This document shows, piece by piece, positions 4,352-61,403 of a stretch of 64,000 bases of DNA (the stretch's first letter is position 1; each line of letters opens with the position of its first letter). The notes under the pieces were generated by a model, which was given only the letters and a program-made list of their open reading frames with translations, did no database searches and had not been told where the DNA came from. The stretch lies in the sequence record LR745206.1; one strand, 5' to 3'. The translations under genes and the position numbers were made by a program.

Positions 4352-5107
4352 ATGAAATATTTAAAATCTTTTAACGAGAATGAATTTACTAAGTTAGCTA
4401 CCCATTTTATGGGTGATATGGATAAGAGCTTAAAGTTCACAGAACCAGCTGATAATGTTAGGTTAAGATTTTGTAATGTTACTTTTCCTGATGGGGTTAA
4501 GATTAGATTTAGAATGCATGAGAATATAAACTCAGATACAGAGACTATAACATTAAGATCGATAGAAGATGGTAGTGTTCAACAAAGACTATCAACTGCT
4601 TATCTAAACCTATATGGTCGTAAGTTACAATTTGATAATTATCAAGCTTTTAGAAGAATTAGGCTTTATATGAATGCTGTTGATTTATTTGATACTGAAT
4701 TTGAGGGATATATTTATGATGCTAATAAATTAGGATTTATTGAGGTGAGTATTGAAATAGATGATTCTAATATAAAGACAGATAACCCATCTAGTTTCAC
4801 TGACAATAGATCCATTCTAGATTCATTGGAGGGTTCATTATCTATATTAGAGAATGATGAATATATTAATGAGTTTAGAAAGAAAAAGAATGAGTTGATA
4901 AGAGACTTCATGGAAGTGTTGGAAAGTATGGGTGGTAACGATATAGTACCATTTGATATTACGTATAATGGTATGAATCTAATTGGGTATCTTTATCTAT
5001 TCACCATCTTAATAGAAGAACATGAGGATGTTCTAAAGGTATTGAAGATGTCTAGGAGGAGATTTAATAGAGAAGAATTAATAGGTATACTTTATGTAAT
5101 AGGATAA
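4352..5107 (+). CDS. hypothetical protein, N-tag
   Basis: Starts MKYLKSFNENEF. Confidence 0.8.
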   Translation: MKYLKSFNENEFTKLATHFMGDMDKSLKFTEPADNVRLRFCNVTFPDGVKIRFRMHENINSDTETITLRSIEDGSVQQRLSTAYLNLYGRKLQFDNYQAFRRIRLYMNAVDLFDTEFEGYIYDANKLGFIEVSIEIDDSNIKTDNPSSFTDNRSILDSLEGSLSILENDEYINEFRKKKNELIRDFMEVLESMGGNDIVPFDITYNGMNLIGYLYLFTILIEEHEDVLKVLKMSRRRFNREELIGILYVIG

Positions 5108-5136
5108 ACTTCATGATTTGTATTTATATAAATTAA

Positions 5137-5544
5137 ATGAAAACATCTCCAAGTAATTTCAAATTACACAAACTAACATATAAGTTAAGTAAATCTGAAT
5201 TAAATAGAGATAATATACAAATAAAATTACCAGATCATATTGAGTCTATTCTATCAGTATCTCCCGTTATATCTAAATGGCAAAAGATTATTCATAGATT
5301 TAGATGGTTGGTTACATCTTCTATGTTTATGATAGTTAGATTTGTTACTAAACTCATATATATTCATCCTGGTCAATATATACCACTAGGTGATATTATT
5401 AAGTTCGATTATAATACCAAGAATAATATACTAACTATGTTTAATGTGACAGCTTATGACAAGGAATATTATACTAAGATTGATATAATGTATATCTCAA
5501 AGAGTGAGGATAGAAATAAGATATTAGAGAAGTTGGGTATTTAA
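5137..5544 (+). CDS. hypothetical protein, C-tag
   Basis: Ends DRNKILEKLGI. Confidence 0.7.
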   Translation: MKTSPSNFKLHKLTYKLSKSELNRDNIQIKLPDHIESILSVSPVISKWQKIIHRFRWLVTSSMFMIVRFVTKLIYIHPGQYIPLGDIIKFDYNTKNNILTMFNVTAYDKEYYTKIDIMYISKSEDRNKILEKLGI

Positions 5545-5787
5545 TATATTATCAATTTTAATATCCCTTGATTCTTCTGGTGTTTCAAAATATTCATCAA
5601 TATCAAACCAACCAGATCCATTTGGATTAATTTCATCTGGTATTAAGAAACACCAATATCTCACACCATCATCCCTAGTTTGTTTTTCTAGTACTTTATA
5701 ATAAACATCCTCAGATATTCTTGGAAACTTTACTCTCGTAAGAGTATCTAACATATAATATGTTTTCTTACATCTTAATTTCATCAT
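5524..5787 (-). CDS. hypothetical protein, C-tag
   Basis: Ends SRDIKIDNILN. Confidence 0.7.
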   Translation of the reverse strand: MMKLRCKKTYYMLDTLTRVKFPRISEDVYYKVLEKQTRDDGVRYWCFLIPDEINPNGSGWFDIDEYFETPEESRDIKIDNILNTQLL

Positions 5788-6196
5788 CCAAAATAGAGTT
5801 TATCTTTTTTTCTCTTAGTTTACTTGGTGAGTTTTCAATAAACCAATCCATATCCATTGGTGTATTTATATCTTCCATTGTTAGTCCATATTCCTTTAAG
5901 AAGGAATAATCACCACTATTTAATGATTTTAATGTTTTTAAAACAGGATTTAGATCTTTACTATATTTTTGTAGGATACTAATATCCATATTATCCATAT
6001 TATCTAGTATCCATAAAATAAGATTAAACATTATTTTATTTCCATGTGATGTTGATATATCTAAATAGTGTTCTATATTGGTGTATATAAAACTATTATC
6101 AGTTTCTTTCGGGATGATTTCCACTTTTTCATTTGGGTCAGGAACCCAACCTTCTTCTGTGAATATCACACCTGGATAATTTTCGTTTGTGTACAT
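5768..6196 (-). CDS. hypothetical protein, C-tag
   Basis: LREKKINSILDD. Confidence 0.7.
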   Translation of the reverse strand: MYTNENYPGVIFTEEGWVPDPNEKVEIIPKETDNSFIYTNIEHYLDISTSHGNKIMFNLILWILDNMDNMDISILQKYSKDLNPVLKTLKSLNSGDYSFLKEYGLTMEDINTPMDMDWFIENSPSKLREKKINSILDDEIKM

Positions 6197-6579
6197 TATA
6201 CTAAAGTTATTTCTACTTTTTTTATTTCAGTGCTATTTTTAATGTATAGAGGATTAAAGTTATTATTACCTCTTGCTCTTTCGGTATATAAACCATCAAA
6301 AAATGATGTGTCAATATCTACTCTATATTTGAATTCATCATGTTTGATTTTATCAAAATTATTATATAATCTAGCACCATTTATGCGATTCTTTGTTGTT
6401 AAATCAAAATAAATATCTTTTTTATTTCTATAATAGAATAATCTCAATAGAATGTCTTTTATATCACCCACTCTGACTTTGAATGGATATTTATGTATTT
6501 CTATTGAATATTTACTATAAGATATAGTATATCCTTCATCTTCCAATTCAAGTAAAATATCTTTGATATCATCATTCAT
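6196..6579 (-). CDS. DIKDILLEL-family protein
   Basis: Start moved to MNDDIKDILLELEDEGY. Confidence 0.7.
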   Translation of the reverse strand: MNDDIKDILLELEDEGYTISYSKYSIEIHKYPFKVRVGDIKDILLRLFYYRNKKDIYFDLTTKNRINGARLYNNFDKIKHDEFKYRVDIDTSFFDGLYTERARGNNNFNPLYIKNSTEIKKVEITLV

Positions 6580-6635
6580 GTTATAAAGGTAATAAAAATC
6601 TACCAAATAAAAAAATATTATTAATATATAAGGTA

Positions 6636-7070
6636 ATGAAATACTTAAAGCTATTTAATGAGAGTAAAGGAACTTTTACTAAGGATGATATAGAGAGGAA
6701 AACTGAGGATATGTTAGATACTTTATTGGAAGTATTTGATAAGTATAACATAGGTTGTTTTGATGATTTAGATTCAGAACAAGCTTGGTGGTATATAAGA
6801 AGTATATGGAAAGATTCACAATACCAAGAAGATATAGAGTATGTTAATGATGGTATAACTATTTTACATTTCAGAGGTAGTGATGAATTATATAAAAATA
6901 TTTATAATGATATAAAAGAGTTGGTTCCAATAATTGAGTCAAGAACAGGATTGGGTGTTAAGCTTATATCTTCGGGTTATAAAATATCAATTGAGTTAAA
7001 ATGGGAAACGGTTGGTAGGAAATTAAAATCATTTTTTACTGGATACACATCAAATACTGGACCTAGATAG
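6636..7070 (+). CDS. hypothetical protein, N-tag
   Basis: MKYLKLFNES; TAATATATA at 6622-6630. Confidence 0.8.
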   Translation: MKYLKLFNESKGTFTKDDIERKTEDMLDTLLEVFDKYNIGCFDDLDSEQAWWYIRSIWKDSQYQEDIEYVNDGITILHFRGSDELYKNIYNDIKELVPIIESRTGLGVKLISSGYKISIELKWETVGRKLKSFFTGYTSNTGPR

Positions 7071-8749: not shown

Positions 8750-9208
8750 TTAATCCTCACTTATTATTATTCTGATATAGTCAATTGGTGCCTTACCTAT
8801 ATCTAATAAAACACCATCAATATTATTTTTATCCTCTTTGAACTTTTCATAAGTGCAAATTTGACTTTCACTAATAGCTTCTAGTGTTAATGTATATCCA
8901 TTTTCTATCGTATATGATAGAAGATGTTCTATTGAGTCTGATATTGTTCTATTTATAATATATGGTTTTGTTAAATAGTCTCTTGTTACAACTGTGTTAA
9001 CTTCTTCTGTATCATCCAATTTCTCGATATAGATTCGAATATTCTCTCCTTGAACTTCCAATATATCATTATGATCAATATCATGTATTTCCACATAGAA
9101 CCCATCATCTTGTATATCAGCTAATATATCTCTGACATTATCCGAGAATGTTTTATCCGGACTAAAAGTACCAAGAACATCAAATGATTCGAATTTTAGA
9201 ATTTTCAT
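8750..9208 (-). CDS. DIKDILLEL-family protein, N-tag variant
   Basis: MKILKFESF; NVRDILADIQDDGF. Confidence 0.75.
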   Translation of the reverse strand: MKILKFESFDVLGTFSPDKTFSDNVRDILADIQDDGFYVEIHDIDHNDILEVQGENIRIYIEKLDDTEEVNTVVTRDYLTKPYIINRTISDSIEHLLSYTIENGYTLTLEAISESQICTYEKFKEDKNNIDGVLLDIGKAPIDYIRIIISED

Positions 9209-9252
9209 AGGTTATATATTTAATATATAAAATCACAAAATTAGAACACTAT

Positions 9253-9444
9253 ATGAAGTATTTAAGAACATTTGATGAGATAAATGAAAGAAGTTCAACT
9301 AAAGTAAGAACATCTTCTAAAAGAAAATCACCAACTGATAGTGCTACTGATCATAAAGTAGGTACTGAAATGGAAGGTAATGATGGTGAGATGTGGTGTG
9401 TTAAGACCGATAAAAACGGTGTTAAGAGCTGGAAAAGAATTTAA
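9253..9444 (+). CDS. small basic protein, N-tag
   Basis: MKYLRTFDEINE plus RKSPTDSAT..GNDGEMW..NGVKSWK motif. Confidence 0.75.
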   Translation: MKYLRTFDEINERSSTKVRTSSKRKSPTDSATDHKVGTEMEGNDGEMWCVKTDKNGVKSWKRI

Positions 9445-11460: not shown

Positions 11461-11757
11461 CTATATCCACCTAGATTTCCATTTAACATTTTTCTTAGCC
11501 ATCATATTCATTAAATCCTCATATGTTATTCCATACGTATCAATTAATGATATAACACACTGGATTGTATCAGCAGCTTCTTCACAAATTAAGTCTATAA
11601 CTTCTTCCTTAGAGGTTGTATTTACTTTTCGACCTATTGACTTGTTAACAGCTTGTGCTAACTCCCCTGACTCTTCAAACAGCTTACAGAGTCTTTCTGC
11701 CGGTCCTACTTGATCCAATTTATTGATTTCTTGAATCTCTTTGTATAATTCTTTCAT
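11461..11757 (-). CDS. mazG: MazG-like nucleotide pyrophosphohydrolase
   Basis: KLFEESGELAQAV ... EEAADTI acidic helix motifs. Confidence 0.85.
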   Translation of the reverse strand: MKELYKEIQEINKLDQVGPAERLCKLFEESGELAQAVNKSIGRKVNTTSKEEVIDLICEEAADTIQCVISLIDTYGITYEDLMNMMAKKNVKWKSRWI

Positions 11758-12239
11758 TATTTATTATTTATTAATATTATATAGATTTTTCTAGCGGCGT
11801 AATAAATGCTTTTTTGGTACTTTTGGTATGTATAATCTCTATCCAGTAAATTGAATAATCTTCCACTACCCATTGTTTCTGTTGTGGATGTTAAATAAGT
11901 TTGTCCTGTATAATCATCGGTTCTATAATCAGGTGTTATCTTTTCCTTAGAATCACTATCACCAACAATTTTAATATTAGTCCATTGACCATCACGATCT
12001 AACTTTATCAAAAATTCATATTCTGGTTTAAATTCCATTAGACGTTTTATTATATCTGACATATAATTCAAACCGATTAATCCAGAATCATTCCTTTCAA
12101 TAACGACAGTCATACCATTATAGTTTCTGATAACAGCAACTTCATAATCATCATTATCAGATAATTCAAAACATATGTCTTGTACATCATGATAATCCCC
12201 AATAGATTCAAATATTTTATAATGTATTATGTGTTCCAC
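11757..12239 (-). CDS. DIKDILLEL-family protein, N-tag variant
   Basis: HYKIFES; DVQDICFELSD; GTG start. Confidence 0.7.
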   Translation of the reverse strand: MEHIIHYKIFESIGDYHDVQDICFELSDNDDYEVAVIRNYNGMTVVIERNDSGLIGLNYMSDIIKRLMEFKPEYEFLIKLDRDGQWTNIKIVGDSDSKEKITPDYRTDDYTGQTYLTSTTETMGSGRLFNLLDRDYTYQKYQKSIYYAARKIYIILINNK

Positions 12240-12243: not shown

Positions 12244-12666
12244 CTATATATTTAATATCTGTTCAATTTTTTTATCTCTTATCCACTTTAGGAGTGATGA
12301 TTTATTGAATTGATGGTTATTTATTTTATTAAAATGTTTCCATTCACCATTTATATCACAGTTATCAAAAGGTGATATTAATAAAATTTCACCACATGGA
12401 TTACTTGACTCAGTGACTTTTGTTTTTATTTTCTTATATCCATTCCATGTTGGTTTAATCATTTCAATAAGAATATAATCACCATTTACATATTGTGTTG
12501 GGGATATCCCATTACCATTTACTATTAAATGATCAGTAACTTTATTATCCTTATCCTTTTGATGAAACCTCATTGTGTTTATTTTATATGAAATTACTTC
12601 ATCAACAATAATTCTATCAGGATATTTCTGATTAATATACTCCTTGATAAGTTCTTTTGATATCAT
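12244..12666 (-). CDS. hypothetical protein, C-tag
   Basis: Ends IRDKKIEQILNI. Confidence 0.7.
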   Translation of the reverse strand: MISKELIKEYINQKYPDRIIVDEVISYKINTMRFHQKDKDNKVTDHLIVNGNGISPTQYVNGDYILIEMIKPTWNGYKKIKTKVTESSNPCGEILLISPFDNCDINGEWKHFNKINNHQFNKSSLLKWIRDKKIEQILNI

Positions 12667-13010: not shown

Positions 13011-13232
13011 TTACCATAATTTAAAATAATCAAATATATTTGGTTTCATGTTTTTATCAAGTTGAAGAGTAACTCCGAATCTATCATCATAATCTTCATC
13101 TGATATCTTTATATCAACATCACTTATTTTTATAATTCTATATTTAGCACCTGGTCTAAACAATGTTCCAAATTGTCTTGTACATGTAAGTTTATTACCA
13201 ACTACTAGTTTATCACTTTTTATTAAAATCAT
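13011..13232 (-). CDS. 73-aa paralog family member 1
   Basis: Aligns by eye with 33906..34127 and 34121..34342. Confidence 0.75.
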   Translation of the reverse strand: MILIKSDKLVVGNKLTCTRQFGTLFRPGAKYRIIKISDVDIKISDEDYDDRFGVTLQLDKNMKPNIFDYFKLW

Positions 13233-15114: not shown

Positions 15115-17613
15115 TTATTTTAATACAGTAACATGACCATGATGTTTATGTTTCCTATCTGACATAGTTTCTTTGAACTCAATTTGCCATACATAGACAC
15201 CAGACTCAGTAGTTTTACTACCATACGTACCATCCCATGATTTAGAAGCATCATATGATTCGAAAACGATTTCACCCCATCTATTAAATATGGTCATATG
15301 AAAGTCATAAGGATCATATCCAGAATAGAATACTGGTTGAAAAACATCATTCAACTCATCACCATCTGGTGTAAATGAATTCGGTACATAGAAAGTGATA
15401 ACATCATTAACGATTATTAGTTTAGATGTTTCATCTTGACAACCCAAATCATTCTCAACAGTTAAGGTAACAATATAGTTTACATTAGGTACGTCAGGAA
15501 ATAGATGTGATGGGTCTTCAATATTTGATACCGGACTTCCATCGCCAAAATTCCAACTTGATGTTGTTGAATTAAATGAAGTATTGTCAAATAAAATCAT
15601 TGGATCATCAATAGTAGCGTTACCACTAAACCCAAAGGATGCAATAGGAGTGGATATAACTTCAATATAATCTGTGTATGTAACTGTTCCTTGACATCCA
15701 CCTGGTAGTGTGACAGTTAGTGTAACATCATATGTTCCTTCTTGGTTATAGGTATTGGTTACAACACCACAACCAGTTCCAGTATTTCCATTTCCAAAAT
15801 TCCAATCACAAGATGAACCAGGAAATGGTGTTGTTAAGTTTGTAAACTGAACCGTGAATGGATCACATCCAATAAGTGTATCTGCTAAAAATACAACTGA
15901 TGGATTTGTAATTACTTCAATATCCACCATATCAGTATTCTGACATCCATTAGCATCTGTACCTATTACTGTGTAAGTGGTTGTGACTCCAACGGGTGGT
16001 GTGAATGGATTACCATCAATAACTCCACCATCCCAAACGTAACTTGTACCACCAGAACCATTAAGAGTAGTAATAACTCCTTGACAAAGTGTTTGATCAG
16101 GTCCTGCCCCGATTACCGGAATTGGATTAACTGTTACATACATATTATCTGTTGAGATACATCCAAGTAAATCTGCGGTTACTGTATAAGTTGATGATGA
16201 TACCAAGAAAGGTGTTCCGTCAATAACTCCACCATCCCATGATATAACAGCACCATCTGGATTATTTGCTATTAGTGTGACCAAGTCACCATCACATATA
16301 GTTACATCAACACCAGCTCCAATTATTGGATAAGGATTTGATGTAACATCTACAACATCAGTTGAAATACACCCAAGTAAATCTGCTGTTACGGTATAGG
16401 TAGTAGTTGTTCCTGTTGGTGGAATAAATGATATTCCATCGGTAACTCCACCAGTCCAAACTAATGTAGCACCATCTGGATTAATAGCCGTTAATGTTAC
16501 GTTTGATCCATCACATACTGTTTGGTCAACTCCAGCATCTATTACTGGTATAGGATTTACAGTTATACAAATTGTATCTGAGTAAGCTATAGTTCCACAA
16601 CTACTAACTTCTGCTCTATAACAAACATCAGAACTTAGTGAACCAGTAGTCCAAGTATCTAATACTTCACCAACAACTGTTACAAAAGGTCCAGCTGATG
16701 TAGGTGCACTTTCCCATTGGATAGTTCCAAAATATCCTACTAGAGTAATATCAGTTGTTTCACCATCACATATTGTTGTTGGTATAGCACTTGCGATTCC
16801 TCCAATTGGAGCAGTAGGTGTATATGTTATTGAAGAATATCCATTTCCGGTATTAGCTCCTGGTGTACAAACACCACCTGGGTTTAGTGAAGAGCCTCCA
16901 CCTCCGCCACCGCCGCCATTAGCGCCTGTGCAACATCCATCATTACCTCCGCCTCCACCGCCGAAGTAACCACCTCCGCCTCCACCACCGGAAGCAGTTT
17001 GCCATTGTCCACCCATCCCACCTTGTCCAGATGTGCCGGGTTGTCCACCGGGTGGTGTCCCTGCCCAAGGTGCACCTCCAGCTCCACCAGCTACTTGTGT
17101 TCCTGGTCCACCTCCAGCACCATATGTACTAACACCAGCAGTTCCGATTAGACATCCACCATTTCCACCACCGTTAAAAACATCTGAACCTCCACCACAT
17201 CCTCCGCCACCAGATGCAACTGCGGTCAAAACACCATTAACAAGTATATTTGTTGAACCTCCTCCACCACATGACCCGTAGTTTGGATTTCCATCACTTG
17301 AATTAAACCCAGTTCCTCCACCGTTATATCCTGGTGTAGGACATCCACCTTGACCACCAACTATAATTTCAATTATATCTCCTGGGAGAACTGGAATAGT
17401 AGCAGTTATTATAGCACCGTCTCCACCATTAGATCCACCAACCCCACCGCCTTCGGCACCAGCAATAACTATATCAAGTGATGTAACACATGGTGGTACA
17501 ACCCAAATTGATGGAGCTCCTGTATATGAAAAATTCACAACTGTTTGTGAATATGGTATAAATGATAGGAAGGTTATAAATAGAAAGGATAATATTTTCT
17601 TTGATAGTTTCAT
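15115..17613 (-). CDS. Gly-rich/PKD protein with T9SS type B (gliding-motility-associated) C-terminal domain
   Basis: Signal peptide; GGxGG-rich domain; WNFGDG PKD motifs; YVPNSFTPDGDELND..IFNRWGE..GVYVW. Confidence 0.9.
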   Translation of the reverse strand: MKLSKKILSFLFITFLSFIPYSQTVVNFSYTGAPSIWVVPPCVTSLDIVIAGAEGGGVGGSNGGDGAIITATIPVLPGDIIEIIVGGQGGCPTPGYNGGGTGFNSSDGNPNYGSCGGGGSTNILVNGVLTAVASGGGGCGGGSDVFNGGGNGGCLIGTAGVSTYGAGGGPGTQVAGGAGGAPWAGTPPGGQPGTSGQGGMGGQWQTASGGGGGGGYFGGGGGGNDGCCTGANGGGGGGGGSSLNPGGVCTPGANTGNGYSSITYTPTAPIGGIASAIPTTICDGETTDITLVGYFGTIQWESAPTSAGPFVTVVGEVLDTWTTGSLSSDVCYRAEVSSCGTIAYSDTICITVNPIPVIDAGVDQTVCDGSNVTLTAINPDGATLVWTGGVTDGISFIPPTGTTTTYTVTADLLGCISTDVVDVTSNPYPIIGAGVDVTICDGDLVTLIANNPDGAVISWDGGVIDGTPFLVSSSTYTVTADLLGCISTDNMYVTVNPIPVIGAGPDQTLCQGVITTLNGSGGTSYVWDGGVIDGNPFTPPVGVTTTYTVIGTDANGCQNTDMVDIEVITNPSVVFLADTLIGCDPFTVQFTNLTTPFPGSSCDWNFGNGNTGTGCGVVTNTYNQEGTYDVTLTVTLPGGCQGTVTYTDYIEVISTPIASFGFSGNATIDDPMILFDNTSFNSTTSSWNFGDGSPVSNIEDPSHLFPDVPNVNYIVTLTVENDLGCQDETSKLIIVNDVITFYVPNSFTPDGDELNDVFQPVFYSGYDPYDFHMTIFNRWGEIVFESYDASKSWDGTYGSKTTESGVYVWQIEFKETMSDRKHKHHGHVTVLK

Positions 17614-17925
17614 TTTTTATTTTTTATTTGTTTTTGTTTACCTACTCTGTTAGGGATTTTCAGTTATCTCCCACTAAAATCTTTTTTATCCCCATAGAAA
17701 TATGGAGGTTAAGATTTAGTAAATTAAAAAAGGTGATATAAAATTATTTATTCATGCGTTGAATGATATATATATTACGATGGAAATATTTAAAAGGTAG
17801 CTTTTTTGACGAAAAATCAAAAAAAATTTTACCGTCTTCGACAGGTCTCAAAAAATTTTTAAACTCAGACATCAGAAATAATCACACAAATTAGAATACA
17901 AATAAATATAAATAATATATAGATA

Positions 17926-18765
17926 ATGAAATATCTAAAGCAATATGAAGAGCTTAAAAAGTTCAAGCTTAAAAATCCATTTAAGAAGAGTAAGGAGGAA
18001 AAAGATCATAGTATATCAAAAGAAGATATTTCTAAATTCAAACATCCTGATATCGAGAATATTGATGATGGTAATATAACTTTCAAAAAGTCATTAATTG
18101 ATAAAATAATAAAACTAGATAAAAGACTGAGTGGTTTACGAGCTATTATTTATACAAGTGATGAGTCTGGTGAATTTCCAAAAGGTATTTCTATATGTTT
18201 CATTTTTGATTTGATTGGTAATGACTATTCAAATTTAAATTTTGGTAGAGATGTCAGATCCCGTACTATGGTTAGATCAAAAGTTATGAATTCTGATGTT
18301 TGGGAGGTTATGAAATATGTTTACCTACCGTATATTAACAAAAGGACAGATGAAGTGGTCAATTTAGAAAAGATATCATCATTTTTTGATGATATTTTAC
18401 AAATATCCAGAACTTGGTCATTATCTAGTGCTCTAGATGAATCTACTAAGAGGTATAATAGAAATATAAAAACAGAATTAATACAATCACATATTAGTGA
18501 GATAGAGGATTATTTTTTGGATTTAATTGATTTGAGTTATTCACATCATATTATGAAAAATCAAGCTGATGGTATAACATTAATATTCGATATCGAGAAA
18601 ATATATGTGGATAGTTTAGGTGATAGAACTTTTAGATTGGATGGTGTTATGTCAAAAGTTATGGATCATTTATTGGAGATAGAGGATAGAGTATCGAGTT
18701 TAATACCTAAAGCTGAATTTTTAGTTGATATAAAAAGTAATAAAGTTAGTATTTATATAAAATAG
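17926..18765 (+). CDS. hypothetical protein, N-tag
   Basis: MKYLKQYEE; TAATATATA at 17913-17921. Confidence 0.8.
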   Translation: MKYLKQYEELKKFKLKNPFKKSKEEKDHSISKEDISKFKHPDIENIDDGNITFKKSLIDKIIKLDKRLSGLRAIIYTSDESGEFPKGISICFIFDLIGNDYSNLNFGRDVRSRTMVRSKVMNSDVWEVMKYVYLPYINKRTDEVVNLEKISSFFDDILQISRTWSLSSALDESTKRYNRNIKTELIQSHISEIEDYFLDLIDLSYSHHIMKNQADGITLIFDIEKIYVDSLGDRTFRLDGVMSKVMDHLLEIEDRVSSLIPKAEFLVDIKSNKVSIYIK

Positions 18766-18782: not shown

Positions 18783-19250
18783 ATGAAATACGTTGAATTA
18801 TTTGAAAATTTCAAGAAGAGTAAAAAGAGTAAAAAGGTTAATGAGTTATCAGGAATTGTTTTGATTGTTGATAATAGAATATTAATGGTTAAAGCTACTA
18901 AATACTCTGATTATGATGATAGATGGTCAATTCCAAAAGGTCATATAGAGGGAAATTCACTAGATTCTGCTATAAAAGAGCTATATGAGGAGTCTGGGAT
19001 AAAAATAGATACAAATTATGATGTTATGTTTGATATCCAGTATGTGAAGTCTGGTGTTATTAAAATAATGGATGTTTATGTATATCACCGAGATAGAAGT
19101 GAATTTGAGAATTATTTGGATGGTTGGGAGATATCTAGTGATTTTTTACATGAAGAAGAGATAACAGAAGCTGAATTTTTCACACCAAGCGAAGCTATAC
19201 AAAGAATAGATATATCAATGATAGATATATTGGATATAGTTGAATTCTAA
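18783..19250 (+). CDS. NUDIX hydrolase, N-tag
   Basis: MKYVELFENF; Nudix box PKGHIEGNSLDSAIKELYEESG. Confidence 0.85.
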   Translation: MKYVELFENFKKSKKSKKVNELSGIVLIVDNRILMVKATKYSDYDDRWSIPKGHIEGNSLDSAIKELYEESGIKIDTNYDVMFDIQYVKSGVIKIMDVYVYHRDRSEFENYLDGWEISSDFLHEEEITEAEFFTPSEAIQRIDISMIDILDIVEF

Positions 19251-28538: not shown

Positions 28539-29053
28539 TATCTTGTATATTTTTTTGATTCGTAAGAGTTAAAATATATAGCTATAACCGGACCATCTAT
28601 TTTCTCACCAGTTTCTATATTTCTATATTGATGTCCTGACATATCCAATGCAATGTCATTTTTTAATATGTATGTTAGTTCCTCACCTAAATAATCTTTT
28701 ACTCTCTCTGTTACCTCCATAACATCAATATTATTAATTAAATTAGAAATACACCAACTTGATACACTTTTAGATATAACAGAAGGTGTTATGATGGCTA
28801 CTTTATATAAAGTGGTTACTTCATATTTCCTATCAACGGCTTTCAATCTATGATATTGGAACTCTTCTTCAAATGACACATCATTATCTCTTTCCAATTC
28901 ATAAAATTGAACCATTTTTCTATTTCTAGGTTTACCCATTACATCTTGAACGATAACATCGAAGTTGGAGGTATCTTCCAATTCAAGGAATATATCTTCA
29001 ACCATATCAGCATTCACTAAATCATTTATTGGATGTTTCTCTCTGGTATACAT
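28538..29053 (-). CDS. DIKDILLEL-family protein
   Basis: MVEDIFLELEDTSNF; TATCTTTG 5 nt upstream. Confidence 0.7.
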   Translation of the reverse strand: MYTREKHPINDLVNADMVEDIFLELEDTSNFDVIVQDVMGKPRNRKMVQFYELERDNDVSFEEEFQYHRLKAVDRKYEVTTLYKVAIITPSVISKSVSSWCISNLINNIDVMEVTERVKDYLGEELTYILKNDIALDMSGHQYRNIETGEKIDGPVIAIYFNSYESKKYTR

Positions 29054-31972: not shown

Positions 31973-32059
31973 AATTTTCAAATTTTTATTTAAACCAACA
32001 TCTTCCGAAGCCTCTCTTATGAGAAGTTGTTAATTTTGTTAATAAAGTTTAGGGAATAA

Positions 32060-34127: not shown

Positions 34128-34342
34128 ATTTGAAAATATCTGAAAATATTTGGACTTTCACTTTTATTCATCGACATAGACAAAGGGAAAGTTCTATCAT
34201 TTTCATTGTCCATTATGAAAATACTATCATCTGTAATTGAGATTATCTCATAATCCAATCCAGTTGTTAATAAAACAGCCATTGGTGTAATACATTTGAG
34301 TTTTTTACCAACAGCTATGTTTTCACTCTTAATTAATATCAT
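34121..34342 (-). CDS. 73-aa paralog family member 3
   Basis: Tandem paralog of the adjacent gene. Confidence 0.75.
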   Translation of the reverse strand: MILIKSENIAVGKKLKCITPMAVLLTTGLDYEIISITDDSIFIMDNENDRTFPLSMSMNKSESPNIFRYFQIW

Positions 34343-37057: not shown

Positions 37058-37391
37058 TTACATTTTTAAAATTTATTAGGATGTATTGGTAAAAAGTTAC
37101 ACCATCTTTCTCTATTTTCATATATTTATTATCATGTGAATATCCTTTTTGATCCATATAATCATAGAGCCTTTCACAAAAATCTTCAACCTCATCATAT
37201 GTGAAATTAAAATCTTTCGGTTTTGGAAGAGATACAACATGACCTTTGGCTATATGTATACCTATACTATCATCATATATACCTTCACCAGTTCCTAATT
37301 CAAATCCATCATCTTTCAACTCAAGAAACATATCCTTTATATCATTTAATATAGATTCATTATTAGACTCAAATGTTTTTAAATACTTCAT
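37041..37391 (-). CDS. DIKDILLEL-family protein, N-tag
   Basis: MKYLKTFESNNE; DIKDMFLELKDDGF; TAATATATA at 37396-37404. Confidence 0.8.
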   Translation of the reverse strand: MKYLKTFESNNESILNDIKDMFLELKDDGFELGTGEGIYDDSIGIHIAKGHVVSLPKPKDFNFTYDEVEDFCERLYDYMDQKGYSHDNKYMKIEKDGVTFYQYILINFKNVNDRTG

Positions 37392-37424
37392 TTATTATAT
37401 ATTAAATCTATTTCTTAGATAAAA

Positions 37425-42654: not shown

Positions 42655-44333
42655 TTACTCAGAAATATATTTCTTCTTTACACTACCATCCTCATAGATT
42701 TCAAATATTAAACCTTTTTGGTATTCATCTACTTCTTGTCCTAAAGTATTAACTCTTTTTACTAATGGTGAATTGAATTCTCCTGATACATTTATTGCAA
42801 TAGTATTGAATGTTTCTCTTTCACCATTAAAATCTGTTTGTGACAATCTATAATAAACTACACCAGATCTTACATTAAAATCTTTATATCTATATTCTAA
42901 TGTTGATGATGAATTACCAGCACCTTTTATATTAGTAATATTCGTCCAATTATAACCATTATATGACTTCTCTAATGTATAGAAATCATTATTTAATTCT
43001 GATGCTGATACCCATTTTACCAATAGAATTGATATCATTTGATGGTGTATTGAATAAATTACAAACTCCATATATTGATATATGAAATACACCCAATATT
43101 AACTATTTGTGAATATGTTTTTACACAACCAACAGCATCAGTTACGGTTAGTGAGACTGTATATGTTCCAGTTGTAGCGTATGTATATGAAGTTAATGCA
43201 CCATTTGTTGACGTATTCCCGTCTCCAAAGTTCCATAAATATGTGGAATTTGGGCCTGTGTAAAACGGAGCTCTATTTAATGTTAAAATCATACAGGTTG
43301 CATCAAGTGATGTTGTGAAATCTGCTGGTTGTCCCATAACAGAAGTTCCTCCAAATGTAACACTAAATCCATTATTTGATGCTGAATAATTATCTATTAA
43401 AATTGTATATGTTTGAGCAACTAAATTTATAGTATTGGACCATTGAAATGGTCCGGGAGCACAAGTTCCAGGACCAGGCGGGTTATTGTTTTGCCATAAT
43501 CCAGCTCCTAAACCACCAGCACTTCCAAAGCTAGTAACTGGGTTAGTTGCAATTCCTGTTGTACCAGCACACCCACTCCAATTACATGAAAGTGGTGCTC
43601 CTAATGTAGTTCCACTAGTATAACAACCAGTTGTTGTGTTCCATAAAGCAAAATCATAATCATTTGTATAAGTTACTGGATTTATCATAAACACGAATGT
43701 TCCACTAACACCTACTGTGAATTTATACCATTTAGATTGTTGTTCATTGGCACCAAAACATGAATTTGTTGAGATATTTTCAGCAACCCCTATCCCAGAA
43801 AACATACCTTGTGAGAATGATGAATTATCACACAATACTGCTGAATTAGTACAATCTTGTCCAGGTACAGGTGGTGGGGTTGTGTTGGTAACACAAGTTG
43901 TGAATGTCCCAAGTGATCCTGTATTTGAAATAGTATAATAATATGTTGCTCCTATTGTTAGGTTGTTAGATACCATACCAACTAATGGACTTGCCCCACA
44001 TAAGCTACCTTCAAGTGTTAAACCAGAACAAGGTCCGGTAGATTCAACTAGTATGAATTCAATATTACCAGTCATTGTTCCGTTTGTAACATTAATATTT
44101 AATTGTGTACCAGTTGCTACGAAAGAAAACCAAACCTCTTGGTTATTACCAGCACATCCTACGGTACCTACCCAGTTATCAGCAGATCCTGCTGTTGTTG
44201 TTTGTGGTAGTCCAGGTCCATAACATGTTCCATTTGGATTTACACTAAAAGCTCCTGAACAAAAATCATTTGGTGGTTGCGCATAAATTACTGTTGATAT
44301 TAAAATCAACAACATAGTTAATAGTTTCTTCAT
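42655..44333 (-). pseudogene. secreted PKD/T9SS-type protein split by a micro-inversion at ~43017-43082
   Basis: Signal peptide, PPNDFC, WNFGDG; missing linker LPIELISFDG reads on the opposite strand; tail KRVNTLGQEV..IFEIYEDGSVKK. Confidence 0.8.
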
Positions 44334-45252: not shown

Positions 45253-45516
45253 ATGAAAATGAAAATGAAATATTTAAAAAGTTTTAATGAAGATGTTATT
45301 GATGGTAATGTTATAGAACCATCTTCAACAATGATAGATAATAATTTAGATACGAGTGAGGAAAATCCACTTGATACTGAATTAGAAAATCAAGATGAAC
45401 AATTCAGTATATTCAATGATATAGAATCTGATATTGATAACATGGATCCTTCTGATGCTAAAGATTATCTAAAAAGTATAATCGTGTTCTGTAATCAGAA
45501 GATTAATGATATTTAA
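45253..45516 (+). CDS. acidic protein, N-tag
   Basis: (MKMK)MKYLKSFNED; TAATATATA at 45233-45241. Confidence 0.75.
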   Translation: MKMKMKYLKSFNEDVIDGNVIEPSSTMIDNNLDTSEENPLDTELENQDEQFSIFNDIESDIDNMDPSDAKDYLKSIIVFCNQKINDI

Positions 45517-50786: not shown

Positions 50787-51368
50787 ATGAGATACCTAAA
50801 AGCTTTTGAAAATTTCAAAATTAATGAAGAAACAGAGGGTGATATAGATCAAGTTGTTACACAGAAGATTAATAATTTATCTGATGAGGATAAAGATAAA
50901 GTTAAAAATGAACTAATTAACCTAGCTGATAAACTTGGATTATCACCGGAGGATATGACAGATCCAAATAAAGTAGGTGAAGCACTATCTAAACATCAAG
51001 GTGAACTTGCTGAAATAACTGAATCAGTTCTTAATGAAGGATTGAGTGATTGGTGGGGTAGAGTAAAAAACTCTTTCTATTCTTGGATGACTAAGTTAGG
51101 TATTATGGGTATGTTGGGTAGTATAACCAGTGTAGCTATTGGGGCAAATGCTCTAGAAACAGCAACCAATTTAGCTGATTATGTACCAGATTCAGTTGTT
51201 GAGCCTAACACAGCTATTATAATGGGTGGTATTGCTTTGGTAATATCATTAGCGGCTACAATAGTAGGAATGCAAGGTCAATCTAGTCCGGTGGGTTCTA
51301 ATAATGCTATTGATCCTGAAAGAGCGAAGGCGATAATTGCTAAAAGAAAACTTAGACACAGAAGATAA
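50787..51368 (+). CDS. membrane protein, N-tag
   Basis: MRYLKAFENFKINEE; two C-terminal TM segments; tandem TAATATATA at 50744-50759. Confidence 0.75.
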   Translation: MRYLKAFENFKINEETEGDIDQVVTQKINNLSDEDKDKVKNELINLADKLGLSPEDMTDPNKVGEALSKHQGELAEITESVLNEGLSDWWGRVKNSFYSWMTKLGIMGMLGSITSVAIGANALETATNLADYVPDSVVEPNTAIIMGGIALVISLAATIVGMQGQSSPVGSNNAIDPERAKAIIAKRKLRHRR

Positions 51369-51845: not shown

Positions 51846-52133
51846 TTATTTATATATTTCTTTTATAATTTCCAAAGTTTTTTGATTTATTAACTCTTTT
51901 ATCAATGGATCGTTTGGATCATCTTCGATAACACAAAATTCCTTATCCAATCCTTTTATCAATTCATTGTTTATTACAAGTTCTAATTCGTTGGTTGCTT
52001 TATATTTAAACTTTTCGTTATTTAGATAATTTTCATTTATATACTTAGCAAGAATCCTAACTCGATGTTTATTCATTATATCATCTATTTCTTCTAAAGA
52101 AAGCTTTGATAATTTTATTCTCTTTTCCGACAT
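51846..52133 (-). CDS. hypothetical protein
   Basis: 95 aa, coupled. Confidence 0.6.
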   Translation of the reverse strand: MSEKRIKLSKLSLEEIDDIMNKHRVRILAKYINENYLNNEKFKYKATNELELVINNELIKGLDKEFCVIEDDPNDPLIKELINQKTLEIIKEIYK

Positions 52134-52402
52134 TAGTTATTCTTTTTAAATTTTTGTTCTTTTCCACAATAGAAGCATTTTATGTATCTATTATCATCAA
52201 CACCAACAATCCTTTTATCACATTGGCTCAAACACTTAACCTGTGATTTAACATCACTACGATCAACTATTTTTGTTCTCTTGGATTTGAAGAATTTAAC
52301 CACGACATCATCATCTTTTTCGGATAAGACTTTACCAAGCTTACCATTAACGGTAACAATTTCTTCTGGTGTAAATTCCTCAAATAGCTTTATATAAAAC
52401 AT
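52133..52402 (-). CDS. SH3/Zn-ribbon protein, N-tag variant
   Basis: MFYIKLFEEF; CLSQC..CFYC. Confidence 0.65.
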   Translation of the reverse strand: MFYIKLFEEFTPEEIVTVNGKLGKVLSEKDDDVVVKFFKSKRTKIVDRSDVKSQVKCLSQCDKRIVGVDDNRYIKCFYCGKEQKFKKNN

Positions 52403-52426
52403 AAGTTATATATAAAGTTGGTAAAC

Positions 52427-53462: not shown

Positions 53463-53849
53463 ATGAAGTACTTAAAGAAGTTTTTCGAAGACCTTGAAGA
53501 GGCTCAAGAAGAAATGGCACAAGCTCAAAATGAGGGTGACATGGGTGCTTGTATAGAAGCATGTAGAAAATGTGTAGAAATCTGTAACAAATGTGCTGAG
53601 GAATGCGCATCAAATGATATGGAAGATTGTGCAAAGATATGTAAAGAATGTGCCTTACTATGTGAGTTGTGTGCTACATCTTGTGAAAATGGATCAACAA
53701 GATCTAAAGACATATGTGAACTTTGTGTTGATGTGTGTAAAGATTGTGTTGAATCTTGTGAGAACTGTGGATCAGAAACCTGTACAGAATGTGTTGGTGT
53801 TTGTAACACTTGTATCGAAGAGTGTATGAAATGTCTCGAAACTATGTAA
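53463..53849 (+). CDS. Cys-rich four-helix copper-storage-like (Csp/DUF326) protein, N-tag
   Basis: MKYLKKFFE; 24 Cys in CxxxCxxC periodicity. Confidence 0.75.
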   Translation: MKYLKKFFEDLEEAQEEMAQAQNEGDMGACIEACRKCVEICNKCAEECASNDMEDCAKICKECALLCELCATSCENGSTRSKDICELCVDVCKDCVESCENCGSETCTECVGVCNTCIEECMKCLETM

Positions 53850-54883: not shown

Positions 54884-55291
54884 TTAATATTGTGTTATTG
54901 TTAATTTTTGCCCACCGTACCAAGGGGAAATATAAATTTCTTTTCCATCAATTTCATCACATGGGAATTGTTCAAATCCTTCACCAATACCATCAGACCA
55001 TTGACCTTGTGTATATTCACCCAAATCGTGTAATTCATCTGGTGTTAGTTCTCTTGTTGATGAATAGGTAGTTATTGTGTATAATTCACCATTTTCATAT
55101 TTGAATCTCATATAACCACCACTTACCGCATCAGTATATGAATCATCATCAAAATAGTCAGAGAAATTATCTTGACAATCTATACCATCTAATTTAGATA
55201 AATCATCTGTTCCACCAACACTACCAGATTTAGCCTTTATTGTTATTTTCCATTTTTTTGTTTGTTGTTCAAACATTTTTATTTTATCCAT
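54884..55291 (-). CDS. acidic hypothetical protein, N-tag variant
   Basis: MDKIKMFEQ; GQWSDGIGEGFEQ. Confidence 0.7.
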   Translation of the reverse strand: MDKIKMFEQQTKKWKITIKAKSGSVGGTDDLSKLDGIDCQDNFSDYFDDDSYTDAVSGGYMRFKYENGELYTITTYSSTRELTPDELHDLGEYTQGQWSDGIGEGFEQFPCDEIDGKEIYISPWYGGQKLTITQY

Positions 55292-55326: not shown

Positions 55327-56943
55327 TTACCAAGATCCTGATGATCCACCACCACCTGATGATCCACCACCAAATCCACCAAAGCTACTACCACTTGAGC
55401 TACTACCATATGATGATCCACCATACCCACCATAACTACTTGAACTAGAACTTCTTCTCCTTCTTCTAGAACTCTCTTCATCATCTATATCAGAACTAGC
55501 TTTTCTAGTAACTGACTTTATTTCGGATATCAAAGATAATAATAATAAACAAGAAGATATAACCGATGATTGGTCATAATTGGGTGAATATTTCTTTACC
55601 TTATCTTCAACATCCTTAGCCTTTCTTCTTGTTGATGATGATACATCAGAATCTTTACACTTCTTATTCATTTTAGATAATAGATCAGGTAATTCCGATA
55701 ACCCTGATTTAATAGATTTGTTTGATGAATAATGTGATTCGAGATCACTAGAATATTTAGAAATTATAGAATTTGAATGATCAATAAGTGATAAACATTT
55801 CTTATAATCTATTCTTAATTTTTCTATATTTTTTATATCTAAATTTTTCTCTATCTCAGAAAAATATCTTCTACTACTTTCAATATTATTTATAATGTTC
55901 ATATCAGACCATTTGATAGAGTATAGTCCTTTATCATTTGAAACCTTAAAGGATCTAACTGAATCATTTAATGATTTTATTTTATACTCTAGTGTGTTTC
56001 TATCAACAAATGATTTTATTTCTGAAAAATCTTTATGTGTATTAATTATATTAATCATTGGATTAATTGATGAACTAGATATTCTAACAAGTTCACTTGA
56101 TTTACTTTCTAATTTATCTAAAGATATTGATGTGTCACATAGTTTAACTATGTCAGAAATATCATTAGATAATTTTGTCCATTCTTTTATTTTTGGGTTG
56201 TTGGGTTCTAGTGATTTAACCGTTTCTAAAGTTCTGTTGAATTGTATTGCATTAGCTTTTATTTTACTAATAACATTATTAATCATTCTTCTCAATTCTT
56301 CTGCTTTTTCTTTAGCAATTCTTTTTATTGTAAAAAGACCCCATGCCGCAAATCCTAAAACCAAGATAATACCAAACCACATGAAGAAGTTTGCCACTGC
56401 TTTTCTAGATTCTTCTGCATCTTTCTCAGCTTGTATTTTATTTTTCTCAATTTCTGCCTCTCTCTCTATCCAAGTCATTTCACCTAATCTATTTTGAAAT
56501 AGGTCAACTATTGGATTAATACCACCGAAGTAGTCATTTTTTTTGAAGTGTGATGGGAATTCCTTCTCAGCTTCAATCTTAGTATATCCATCAGTCAGAT
56601 ATTCTTCTAGACCATACCCAACTTCAATTCTCCATTTACGTTCATTAGGAGCAATTAGAATCATTAATCCATTATTTTTACCAGATTTACCAACACCCCA
56701 TCTATTATATAAATCGTTGGTAAAACTTTCAACATCACGATCATTAAGTGAATTAACAGTAACAATTGCAAACTCAATATCTGTTTTCTTTTCAAAGTTT
56801 TCAATCTTGGTATTTAAAATTGATTCTTGTTCATCTGATAATACATCAGCATAGTCATTTACCCAATTATTATACTTTAAGTTATCTTGTGAAAAGGAAC
56901 TTAAAGTTAATAAAGTCATTAATATAAATATAATTTTCTTCAT
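55327..56943 (-). CDS. TPM-domain membrane protein
   Basis: WVNDYADVL, WGVG, RIEVGYGLE; TM; coil; GGFGGGSSGGGGSSGSW tail. Confidence 0.9.
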   Translation of the reverse strand: MKKIIFILMTLLTLSSFSQDNLKYNNWVNDYADVLSDEQESILNTKIENFEKKTDIEFAIVTVNSLNDRDVESFTNDLYNRWGVGKSGKNNGLMILIAPNERKWRIEVGYGLEEYLTDGYTKIEAEKEFPSHFKKNDYFGGINPIVDLFQNRLGEMTWIEREAEIEKNKIQAEKDAEESRKAVANFFMWFGIILVLGFAAWGLFTIKRIAKEKAEELRRMINNVISKIKANAIQFNRTLETVKSLEPNNPKIKEWTKLSNDISDIVKLCDTSISLDKLESKSSELVRISSSSINPMINIINTHKDFSEIKSFVDRNTLEYKIKSLNDSVRSFKVSNDKGLYSIKWSDMNIINNIESSRRYFSEIEKNLDIKNIEKLRIDYKKCLSLIDHSNSIISKYSSDLESHYSSNKSIKSGLSELPDLLSKMNKKCKDSDVSSSTRRKAKDVEDKVKKYSPNYDQSSVISSCLLLLSLISEIKSVTRKASSDIDDEESSRRRRRSSSSSSYGGYGGSSYGSSSSGSSFGGFGGGSSGGGGSSGSW

Positions 56944-58572: not shown

Positions 58573-58578
58573 TTTCTT

Positions 58579-59310: not shown

Positions 59311-59345
59311 AAAGTATATATCTAATCAAATATACGAATAATATT

Positions 59346-59534
59346 TCATATATCCTTCATTATAAGTTCAGTTAGTGGGTTGTTATAAATATCAAGCTTA
59401 CCTAAATTGTAACCAACCCATCTTCCTTCTTTCGGAAAATAAACTTTAACCATAAAATAGTCTAACTCTGATATCCACATACTATCTACTATACCAGGTC
59501 CATTTGGTGTGTTGACTTCAACTTCTCTCTTCAT
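59346..59534 (-). CDS. hypothetical protein
   Basis: 62-aa ORF. Confidence 0.6.
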   Translation of the reverse strand: MKREVEVNTPNGPGIVDSMWISELDYFMVKVYFPKEGRWVGYNLGKLDIYNNPLTELIMKDI

Positions 59535-59580
59535 TAATATTTAATAATTTTTTATGAAACTATATATTAATATATATTTA

Positions 59581-60030
59581 ATGAAATATCTAAAATTATT
59601 CGAAGGGGTAGATAATATAAATGAGGAGAAAGATTATATTTTGTATAGTTTAGCTAATTTGGTTATAGATCAAATGGAGGAATATGTTAAAAATGAAACG
59701 ACACATCACACACTTGAATTAGCCAGTGAGCGTTTTAGCGCTACTACAATCTATTCAATTATATTTGGTGGGGAGGATAAGTTAATAATGGGTATAAATA
59801 AGTTATTTGATGAAATGGATTTACACACCGGTGATTATAGAATTAATCAACCCAATGTTAGACTAAATATTAAAACAATGAATATTGAACAATCAGGATC
59901 ATGGTCAAAAACACTATATTTATATATAAGTAATGCTTATAAACTATTGAAATATTGTGATAGTGATGATGAATTAAAGTCTCAGTTATCGAATTGGGAA
60001 GATATAGAAAAATATATGGAGAAGAAATAA
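59581..60030 (+). CDS. hypothetical protein, N-tag
   Basis: Start moved to MKYLKLFEG; TAATATATA at 59568-59576. Confidence 0.75.
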   Translation: MKYLKLFEGVDNINEEKDYILYSLANLVIDQMEEYVKNETTHHTLELASERFSATTIYSIIFGGEDKLIMGINKLFDEMDLHTGDYRINQPNVRLNIKTMNIEQSGSWSKTLYLYISNAYKLLKYCDSDDELKSQLSNWEDIEKYMEKK

Positions 60031-61403
60031 TGTTACAAAGGTCTTATTACGAATTTCTTTTAGAAAAGAGAGAGAATGAAATATTAGAATTATTAAATGA
60101 ATCGGTTTTTATAATGTCTAGTAAAATGGGTGATATCATTGAAGAATTGGTAGATAACAAAGAGGACTATTCGAAAATAGCTAAGTGTTTTTATTTACTT
60201 GATATGGAAGATATAGATACTAAGGTTAGTTACTTAGACCTAGGTGATGATAACTCATCTATAACATTTTTAGATCCTGATAAAGTTGATAAAATTAGAG
60301 ATGAAAAGGGGTGGACGGTAAATGATGTTTATCGTAATGTAAAAGGTAACTCTATTAAAGTTGGTAGATTAGCGAGAAAGGTTATTGAATTATATGTTAA
60401 ATATAAAAAGCCAAAGGGGTCTGATTTTAACTTCACTGATCAGGATATTGAAAAGTTTGTAAATGCTTATAAATCACAATATGATTTTAGTAATAATATA
60501 ATGGATAGTTTTAGTTTAGTGAGTGGTGATGATATAAAGGATGTTTATTTAGATTCTAATTATTATAATGAAGATGGTACACTTGGTGGATCTTGCATGA
60601 GAGATGAAGATTGTCAAGATTATTTTAGGTTATATACTGATTCGTCTGTTAATCTTTTGGTATTAAAATCTCCTAATAAAAAGATAATGGGTCGAGCAGT
60701 TATTTGGACACTAATGGATGGTTCTAAATTCATGGATAGAGTTTATACTAACAGAGATTCCGATGTTGATTTGTTTATTAAGTATGCTAAGGAAAACGGA
60801 TTCACTTATAAAAATAATCAAAATTCATTAGCAAATACTAAATTTCTTACACCAGATGATGATTATTCGGAACCAAAAAATCTCAAATTAGAATCTAAGG
60901 TTTATAAGTTTCGATATGATGAAAGAGAAGATGCTAATTTCCCTTATATGGATACTATGAAATATCTTTATTGGAGAGAAGGTGTTGTCCGTAACTATAC
61001 AACTTCTGGAAGTTATTATGTTTGTATGGAAGATACAGATGGTGGTTGTGACTGTAATGAATGTAATGGTGATGGTAAATCAGAATGTGAATCTTGTCAC
61101 GGTAGGGGTAGTAATGATTGTGATTCATGTGATGGGAATGGATGGACTAACTGTGAGGAATGTGATGGACAAGGTAGTTATGATTGTAGTGAGTGTGATG
61201 GTAGAGGATTAATTGATAATGGTGAAACTGAGTGTGATAAGTGTAGTGGTAATGGTTATGTGGATTGTGATAAATGTTCAGCATCTGGTCACATAGACTG
61301 TGATGATTGTAATACCAATGGATCAATGGAGTGTGAAGATTGTGAAGGTGAAGGTAATGCTTCTTGTTCTAGATGTGGTGGGTTCTCAAATAAATGGGAT
61401 TAA
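60030..61403 (+). CDS. protein with ten C-terminal DnaJ-type CxxCxGxG repeats
   Basis: Start moved to MLQRSYYEFLLE; GSCM..GRAVIW..FMDRVY core; CNECNGDG...CSRCGG. Confidence 0.8.
   Translation: MLQRSYYEFLLEKRENEILELLNESVFIMSSKMGDIIEELVDNKEDYSKIAKCFYLLDMEDIDTKVSYLDLGDDNSSITFLDPDKVDKIRDEKGWTVNDVYRNVKGNSIKVGRLARKVIELYVKYKKPKGSDFNFTDQDIEKFVNAYKSQYDFSNNIMDSFSLVSGDDIKDVYLDSNYYNEDGTLGGSCMRDEDCQDYFRLYTDSSVNLLVLKSPNKKIMGRAVIWTLMDGSKFMDRVYTNRDSDVDLFIKYAKENGFTYKNNQNSLANTKFLTPDDDYSEPKNLKLESKVYKFRYDEREDANFPYMDTMKYLYWREGVVRNYTTSGSYYVCMEDTDGGCDCNECNGDGKSECESCHGRGSNDCDSCDGNGWTNCEECDGQGSYDCSECDGRGLIDNGETECDKCSGNGYVDCDKCSASGHIDCDDCNTNGSMECEDCEGEGNASCSRCGGFSNKWD

Follow-up and report, generated by a model that had tools for sequence, protein, structure and literature searches.

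Knowledge of huge phages comes almost entirely from metagenomes, and for the majority of their genes no function has been assigned. Here we examine a short N-terminal peptide, referred to below as the tag, which is repeated on many proteins of an uncultured phage (sequence record LR745206.1) and which an earlier, sequence-based prediction had put forward as a candidate capsid-targeting sequence (CTS) of the kind found on the internal proteins of T4. The stretch of DNA analysed, called the window, comprises 64,000 nucleotides (nt) and matches bases 1–64000 of this record with 100% identity. The record is 634,780 bp long, carries no annotation, and has a guanine-plus-cytosine content of about 29%. 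Al-Shayeb et al. assigned every genome larger than 634 kb to the "Mahaphage" clade, with predicted replication in Bacteroidetes, and LR745206.1, which exceeds this length, therefore belongs among the genomes of that clade with a predicted Bacteroidetes host (PMC7162821). Window traits consistent with such a host include CHU_C type IX secretion domains, EF-G together with class I aminoacyl-tRNA synthetases, and many TAnnTTTG boxes. The rest of LR745206.1 was also taken in, as a simple set of open reading frames (ORFs) comprising 924 genes, so that the tag could be judged genome-wide.

The class-1 form of the tag, M-K-[YH]-[LI]-[KR]-x-[FY]-[NE]-E, opens twelve window ORFs, and variants of it open a further two to four. 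All 13 start sites named in the original prediction are present as written, at 4352, 6636, 9253, 17926, 18783, 45265, 50787, 53463 and 59581 on the plus strand and at 9208, 36356, 37391 and 52402 on the minus strand. Three further starts, listed there as variants, fared unequally: 12239 is a GTG start opening with MEHIIHYKIFES, a tag of a second class; 55291 is a weak match (MDKIKMFEQ; 54884–55291, minus strand, 135 aa) that falls under the score threshold and is of doubtful membership; and the ORF starting at 60030 is untagged. Several tagged ORFs are preceded by an ATATATA box, as at 4339–4345, 17915–17921 and 37396–37402, and some contain a motif ending in glutamate at which cleavage may take place (the arrow below marks the candidate position).

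On the plus strand, the 251-aa protein at 4352–5107 (MKYLKSFNE), whose box ends 6 nt before the ATG, is an ORFan, with no Pfam match, no homologue but itself in the phage collection, and no relative in IMG/VR. It is followed by ORFs at 6636–7070 (144 aa, MKYLKLFNES; box 6624–6630), at 9253–9444 (63 aa, MKYLRTFDE; basic; box 9223–9229, 23 nt 5' of the start codon), and at 17926–18765 (279 aa, MKYLKQYEE), the last with a paralogue at genome position 67274 and no match but itself in the phage collection. A NUDIX hydrolase of 155 aa is encoded at 18783–19250; it begins MKYVELFEN, has a second motif, VNE↓L, at residues 19–21, and enters the Pfam domain from residue 25, while its relatives in IMG/VR are distant, high-GC and uninformative. 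Further along lie a very acidic protein at 45265–45516 (83 aa, MKYLKSFNE; box 23 nt 5' of the start codon), a protein with INE↓E at residues 12–14 (50787–51368, 193 aa, MRYLKAFEN), an extremely Cys-rich, possibly metal-binding protein in which CxxC-type spacings recur and which weakly matches DUF326 (53463–53849, 128 aa, MKYLKKFFE), and a second protein with INE↓E, here at residues 13–15 (59581–60030, 149 aa, MKYLKLFEG; box 59570–59576). The 50787 protein had been described as membrane cargo, of which one transmembrane-like segment is what can be recognised. The minus strand carries the short-tagged ORF at 8750–9208 (152 aa, MKILKFESF; box 9213–9219), the class-2 ORF at 11757–12239 (160 aa; box 12245–12251), two ORFs at 35901–36356 (151 aa, MKHIKSYNE; no box within 60 nt) and 37041–37391 (116 aa, MKYLKTFES), and a basic protein at 52133–52402 (89 aa, MFYIKLFEE; box 52407–52413). 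The last had been called Csp-like, an assignment that we could not confirm, as it gives just a weak SH3-like match.

A position-specific score built from the tags and applied to the 924-ORF set gave a bimodal distribution. At a score of at least 12, 68 ORF starts were found genome-wide, against 11 of 179,107 internal protein windows; at a score of at least 10, the number of ORF starts was 73, which constitutes the class-1 set. The class-2 tag, MK[YH]LKxYK[IL]FE[SN], opens 20 further genes genome-wide as compared with 7 internal matches (the internal positions compared number about 180–195 thousand). A degenerate DNA pattern for M-K-[YH]-[LI]-[KR]-x-[FY] matched the window 9 times, where dinucleotide-preserving shuffles predict 0.05. 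Altogether, a tag of 9–12 residues is borne by about 90 of the 924 ORFs (about 10%), roughly 1000-fold over chance, and a chance origin is excluded. The figure of about 14 proteins given by the original prediction thus identified the tag correctly and undercounted its carriers and its classes. An additional candidate, the ORF at 22148 (MKILKFILNIIF), is a regular-expression false positive and encodes a membrane protein.

Conservation is confined to residues 2–12, with information content high at residues 2–10 and at background from residue 13. Position 4 is L, I or V in all 68 tags and position 7 is F or Y in 66 of them; glutamate occupies position 8 or 9 in 65 of 68, and the next residue is mostly Ser or Asn; the C-terminal end of the tag reads Φ-x-E and then S or N, one subclass (see below) fitting less clearly. 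There is no hydrophobic core such as the h-region of Sec or Tat signals, polar or acidic residues coming next, and the tag is therefore not a signal of either type.

The proteins behind the tag, for the most part ORFans, are diverse, although less so than had been supposed. After removal of the first 14 residues, the 73 tagged proteins fell into 64 BLAST clusters, with 58 of the 73 as singletons, and Pfam domains were recognised in only 4 of 72, each once: NUDIX, Peptidase_M15_4, Galactosyl_T and DUF6576. The median cargo length is 159 aa, 75% of the cargo is acidic, and transmembrane-like segments occur in only 2 of 73. Turnover seems to be fast, since for two of the window proteins not even the sister phage has a homologue, and this soluble, mostly acidic, rapidly replaced cargo resembles the T4 internal proteins by analogy. 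Conserved families exist as well; one of them, in a set of 5.8 billion proteins, is represented by 34 metagenomic proteins, all tagged and none informatively named ("hypothetical protein"). Iterative searches with hidden Markov models (HMMs) on tag-stripped sequences, however, revealed one hidden superfamily of 29 genome proteins with an α/β domain beginning DIFxELxDxGF. The claim of unrelated cargo thus holds for the 64 clusters and the four Pfam families, including the NUDIX domain, which was confirmed, but not for that part of the cargo which forms one large, divergent paralogous family.

Most members of this superfamily are tagged, with a tag of either class 1 or class 2, and the others have none; the linker between tag and domain ranges from roughly 0 to 15 residues. 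In the window, the tagged ORFs starting at 9208, 36356 and 37391 belong to it, as do two untagged ones on the minus strand, at 6199–6579 and 28541–29053. The former of these starts directly at the domain, which shows that the tag can be separated from it. For the 37391 protein, an AlphaFold2 model with an alignment drawn from window and IMG/VR members reached a moderate mean confidence (predicted local distance difference test, pLDDT, 71), with values below 50 at tag residues 1–8; a search of the PDB with its fold brought up nothing significant (best E = 0.017, TM-score ≤0.43), and the family is without Pfam matches. The sharp drop in information, the diverse cargo, the coexistence of tagged and untagged superfamily members, the variable linkers and the low-confidence tag in the model all lead us to regard the tag as a separable N-terminal extension.

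The head genes of this phage are of particular relevance to the CTS proposal. Using T4 proteins as phmmer queries, the large terminase subunit, sheath, tube, portal and major capsid protein were found at 166–203 kb, and Pfam identified the portal as gp20-family (Portal_T4, 2.7e-57) and the capsid protein as gp23-family (Gp23, 1.8e-26). Directly upstream of the capsid gene, a 707-aa gene (genome 198546–200669) aligns to T4 gp21 and keeps its GExxHP and SSR motifs. When six homologues of the 707-aa product were combined into a profile, this matched PDB 5JBL, the T4 gp21 prohead protease, at 1.7e-7, whereas the protease domain searched against the PDB as a single sequence gave no match, so that the family profile was required. 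The equivalent gene in Tenacibaculum phage PTm1 is annotated as "prohead core scaffolding protein and protease". In the C-terminal 500 residues of the 707-aa protein, a 14-residue unit, NIAYSEY[LI]AENLDK, is repeated about ten times in tandem; after these repeats comes an acidic stretch of low complexity, in which homologues show little conservation. Judged by these homologies, the phage has a T4-type head with a gp23-family capsid, a gp20-family portal, and a gp21-family (S77) protease fused to the scaffold. The gp21-family proteases studied so far all cut after Glu (PMC5694885).

A glutamate motif like that of the tag is present in the head proteins themselves. Across the genome, Φ-N-E-[SNAG] is rare (123 occurrences in 194,815 residues, 0.63 per 1000), and its density per 1000 residues is 3.4 at positions 1–12, 0.81 at positions 13–40 and about 0.4 elsewhere. 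The capsid protein has SINE↓N at residues 42–45, upstream of the Gp23 core, and this site is unchanged in 69 of 69 IMG/VR homologues, these being the homologues that matched the anchor motif. A 157-aa protein at genome 291407–291880 has SHYAEMHSINEN, a near copy of the capsid N-terminal motif SEYAEFHSINEN, and may be a small protein borrowing the N-terminal region of the capsid protein. Three Φ-N-E-[SNAG] sites are found in the protease-scaffold protein, including VLNE↓S directly after the protease domain; the second scaffold site reads KLNES, KLFES or KVFEN among homologues, the same alternation that separates the tag classes. The protease's own N-terminus contains VLIIE↓N, and T4 gp21 has LIE at residue 9. 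About ten larger proteins carry Φ-N-E-[SNAG] at residues 13–22, including the product of a 794-aa gene adjoining the sheath gene (MKYLSKRSEYLKSAKYKVINE↓S) and that of the untagged window ORF at 60030–61403 (plus strand, 457 aa), a protein with a DnaJ-like Cys-rich domain whose 24-residue N-terminus, with LLNE↓S from residue 22, is a candidate propeptide. Where a tag has no Glu at position 9, a downstream Φ-N-E (residues 10–35) is present in 8 of 31 cases, as compared with 5.8% of untagged proteins (p = 4.5e-4). Within the tags, F-N-E↓S and [IL]-F-E↓S match the Φ-x-E context, while the F-E↓N subclass has no clear fit. Comparing the tags with prohead-protease sites was a check proposed at the outset, and it came out in favour of the proposal at the level of sequence: the E↓[S/N] motif recurs in capsid and scaffold proteins, and we infer that it is a candidate cleavage site.

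A promoter-like sequence provides a further connection to the virion genes. In the 60 nt before the start codon, 49% of tagged genes have an ATATATA box, as compared with 24% of untagged ones (p = 4e-5); the box precedes nine of nine recognised structural genes and is absent at the genes for DNA polymerase, EF-G and the synthetases. The intergenic 8% of the genome holds 68% of the AATATATA octamers. The spacing from box to start codon is bimodal, at 4–5 nt or about 20 nt in the genome-wide set and at 4–6 nt or about 22–27 nt in the window, and in 9 of 16 window cases the box ends 4–6 nt before the start codon, which suggests nearly leaderless mRNAs. The T4 late promoter is TATAAATA, and by analogy with it we infer that the ATATATA box may be a late promoter. 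A second promoter-like motif, the Bacteroidetes-type TAnnTTTG box, lies before many minus-strand genes, for example upstream of 1213, 8702, 15026 and 25306.

The tag is not peculiar to this one genome. Its pattern matched at least 120 stretches in IMG/VR, whereas 596 Gb of cellular genomes yielded only 27, the majority of them in a single bin, Candidatus Muiribacterium halophilum (metagenome-assembled genome JALOAD01). Contigs of that bin contain tandem arrays with dozens of tagged leucine-rich-repeat proteins (MKYIRTFNESTNTSEIEA...), whose lengths differ by multiples of 21 aa, and on another contig tagged repeat proteins stand beside a DNA polymerase with an intein-like insert; because of these arrays and this polymerase, the bin probably contains a mis-binned large phage. 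On this sequence evidence the tag is restricted to phages. Relatives of the capsid protein were found in 458 IMG/VR stretches, and at least 6 of the top contigs are also among the listed tag matches. The sister phage LR756502, whose capsid protein is 76% identical, has 17 tags in its first 50 kb. Tyr stands at position 7 there in 14 of 16 tags from 13 cargo clusters, as compared with 17 of 73 in LR745206.1 (p = 3e-6); such concerted drift across cargo clusters fits a common, phage-specific binding partner. No class-1 tag was found in the 735-kb relative LR756501 (80–130 kb). N-termini in that region such as MEKFRKLKTFENYE and MNKLKTYKTFENAD share, by eye only, the form M-x-K-[LF]-x-x-[LY]-K-x-[FY]-E-N, perhaps a third kind of tag that is specific to this lineage.

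The best-characterised counterpart is the CTS of the T4 internal proteins IPI, IPII and IPIII (Mullaney and Black 1996, via PMC9026906, PMC3012670). In IPIII the first 10 residues suffice for packaging, residues 4 and 7 determining targeting and residues 8 and 10 processing (PMC9026906), and the internal proteins of T-even phages are diverse, with the CTS alone in common (PMC9026906, PMC3012670). In the T4 record, IPIII begins MKTYQEFIAE↓A and IPI begins MKTFKEF. In both systems a short N-terminal peptide begins with M-K, is hydrophobic or aromatic at positions 4 and 7, has Glu at 8–10, and is borne by otherwise unrelated, fast-evolving small proteins in a phage with gp20-, gp21- and gp23-type head genes. 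They differ in sequence (MKYLKxFNE here, MKTYQEFIAE in T4), in the presence here of two tag classes on about 90 carriers instead of a handful, in the predicted Bacteroidetes host, in the fusion of the protease to the scaffold, and in that the present system is known from sequence alone. The common pattern amounts to M-K-x-Φ-x-x-F..E, and a 10-residue peptide cannot establish homology. Akin to what is proposed here, a diverged protease of the gp21 type cuts 8–19 head proteins after Glu in the giant phages phiKZ, 201phi2-1 and SPN3US, whose DNA is ejected together with a large protein mass (PMC5694885, PMC10052503). Their propeptides, however, are often longer than 100 residues, have no common N-terminal consensus and are cut at [SAG]-x-E, whereas the tag described here is a uniform 9–12 residues with a hydrophobic P3. 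The hyperplastic internal-protein loci of T-even phages (T4D, T2L, T6; PMC9026906) likewise combine variable cargo with a CTS-like leader as the only common part, which has been read as an arms race with host defences; they are confined to one or two loci, in contrast to the genome-wide scatter seen here, where tagged genes frequently stand singly, each with a promoter-like box.

Taken together, the T4-type head, the residues at positions 4 and 7, the Φ-x-E end, the E↓[S/N] motif in capsid and scaffold, the box and the restriction to phages argue that the tag is probably a modular, T4-like signal for capsid targeting and processing; the original interpretation is thus supported in part: its analogy with the T4 CTS fits the sequence, the packaging and injection of a payload are predicted from it, and its picture of unrelated cargo does not hold throughout. 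In such a scheme, the tagged genes would be transcribed together with virion genes from the ATATATA-box promoter, and the tag would dock by its hydrophobic face, formed by residues 3, 4 and 7, onto the scaffolding core of the assembling prohead. The gp21-family protease would then cut after Glu (Φ-x-E↓S/N), the cargo would be freed inside the capsid, and it would exit along with the DNA when the next cell is infected. The tag would thus be a new form of a targeting principle already known from T4, unusual in its scale, sequence and host group; the literature searched did not describe this tag, which does not prove that no description exists.

Several observations weigh against this interpretation. 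At least 25 tagged proteins belong to the one superfamily, so that common descent explains part of the recurrence of the tag. About 90 packaged proteins would far exceed T4's three internal proteins plus Alt, and the virion presence, cleavage and injection of the tagged proteins are predictions from the sequence of an uncultured phage. In the F-E-[NS]-[FY] subclass, Glu 8 is without a hydrophobic P3, which makes cleavage there uncertain. T4 IPI scores −13.6 on the tag profile and thus gives no indication of homology with the T4 CTS, and in the sampled parts of cultured or better-known relatives, Tenacibaculum phage PTm1 (last 50 kb) and Lak-A1 (50 kb), the class-1 tag was not found. As for expression, half of the tagged genes lack a box in the 60 nt before the start, the late-promoter role of the box is argued from T4, and a phmmer search found no homologue of the T4 late sigma factor gp55.

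Other explanations were weighed as well. The tag might be inherited and not a functional address, being all that is still recognisable of a fast-diverging paralogous family. The joining of 29 genome proteins, most of them tagged, by tag-stripped HMM searches would be expected on this account, as would the tandem clusters of tagged genes, for example at 451–458 kb, and the family in which MKYLKRFNEEL is invariant down to 29% overall identity. Yet the tag also stands before NUDIX, M15 peptidase, glycosyltransferase and DUF6576 domains, and BLAST leaves 58 of 73 tagged proteins as singletons; the superfamily has tagless members and linkers of variable length, and nine strictly conserved residues beside a sharp drop to background require selection on the tag. 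We therefore consider descent alone improbable. Still less credible, to the point where we give it very little weight, is a nucleic-acid signal, promoter-proximal or for translation initiation, at the 5' end of nearly leaderless mRNAs, with the peptide as a by-product. Bias of this type had been named in advance as the alternative that would overturn the proposal. The 4–6 nt spacing in 9 of 16 window cases would indeed place the first codons at the transcript 5' end, and the tag codons are A/T-rich. But codon choice within the tag for K, L, N, E, H, R, I and S is that of the genome as a whole (Y, F and T are marginally off, p = 0.02–0.05), including alternatives that differ by two bases, with Leu written as TTA, CTA or TTG and Ser as TCN or AGY. 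Selection hence acts on the peptide, and 5' mRNA bias is rejected; many untagged genes, moreover, have the same box and spacing, and the boxless half of the tagged genes does not fit such a signal either.

The alternative to which we assign most weight, while still thinking it unlikely, accepts that the tag is recognised as a peptide but by some other phage-specific partner: a chaperone, the same protease acting outside the capsid in timed degradation or activation, or another late assembly or compartment. Lineage-specific drift at position 7 and restriction to phages need only some phage-encoded partner, not the scaffold specifically. Against this, T4-type phages are not known to have a system of this kind, the agreement in position with the T4 determinants and the E↓S/N motif in capsid and scaffold point to the prohead, and the missing hydrophobic core speaks against the Sec and Tat pathways.

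If capsid targeting is indeed the function of the tag, about 90 genes per genome could be assigned at once to the category "delivered with the DNA at infection", and many hundreds over related contigs, of which public viromes hold hundreds for this clade. It is possible, and we put this forward tentatively, that a clade of huge Bacteroidetes phages loads about 10% of its proteome, some 90 mostly unknown and fast-evolving proteins, into the capsid for injection by means of one peptide address. Packaged genes are a natural place to seek anti-defence and host-takeover factors, and the tag would offer a sequence-only way of listing injected effectors and anti-defence candidates of uncultured megaphages. 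The T4 capsid-targeting principle would then be old, widespread and scalable, and a second, different tag would become available for protein-packaging tools.

Other window genes can be described more briefly. EF-G and two class I aminoacyl-tRNA-synthetase-like proteins, one of the MetRS type and one of the Ile/Leu/Val type, are encoded on the minus strand at 30017–31981, 32195–33568 and 34378–35709, and such translation genes are typical of huge phages. Large proteins with signal-peptide-like N-termini are encoded at 15115–17613 (minus strand) and 25768–27966 (plus strand), both with PKD-type and CHU_C type IX secretion domains, and at 43059–44333 (minus strand), with PKD domains only; all three may be secreted by the Bacteroidetes host during infection or displayed on its surface. 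The minus-strand gene at 55327–56943 encodes 538 aa with a TPM-phosphatase domain behind a signal-like N-terminus. Finally, three 73-aa ORFs, all on the minus strand at 13011–13232, 33906–34127 and 34121–34342, begin with MILIKSDKLVVGNKL, MVKIKSEKIKIGKLI and MILIKSENIAVGKKL, respectively; having a common N-terminus of their own, they form a small paralogue family unrelated to the tag.

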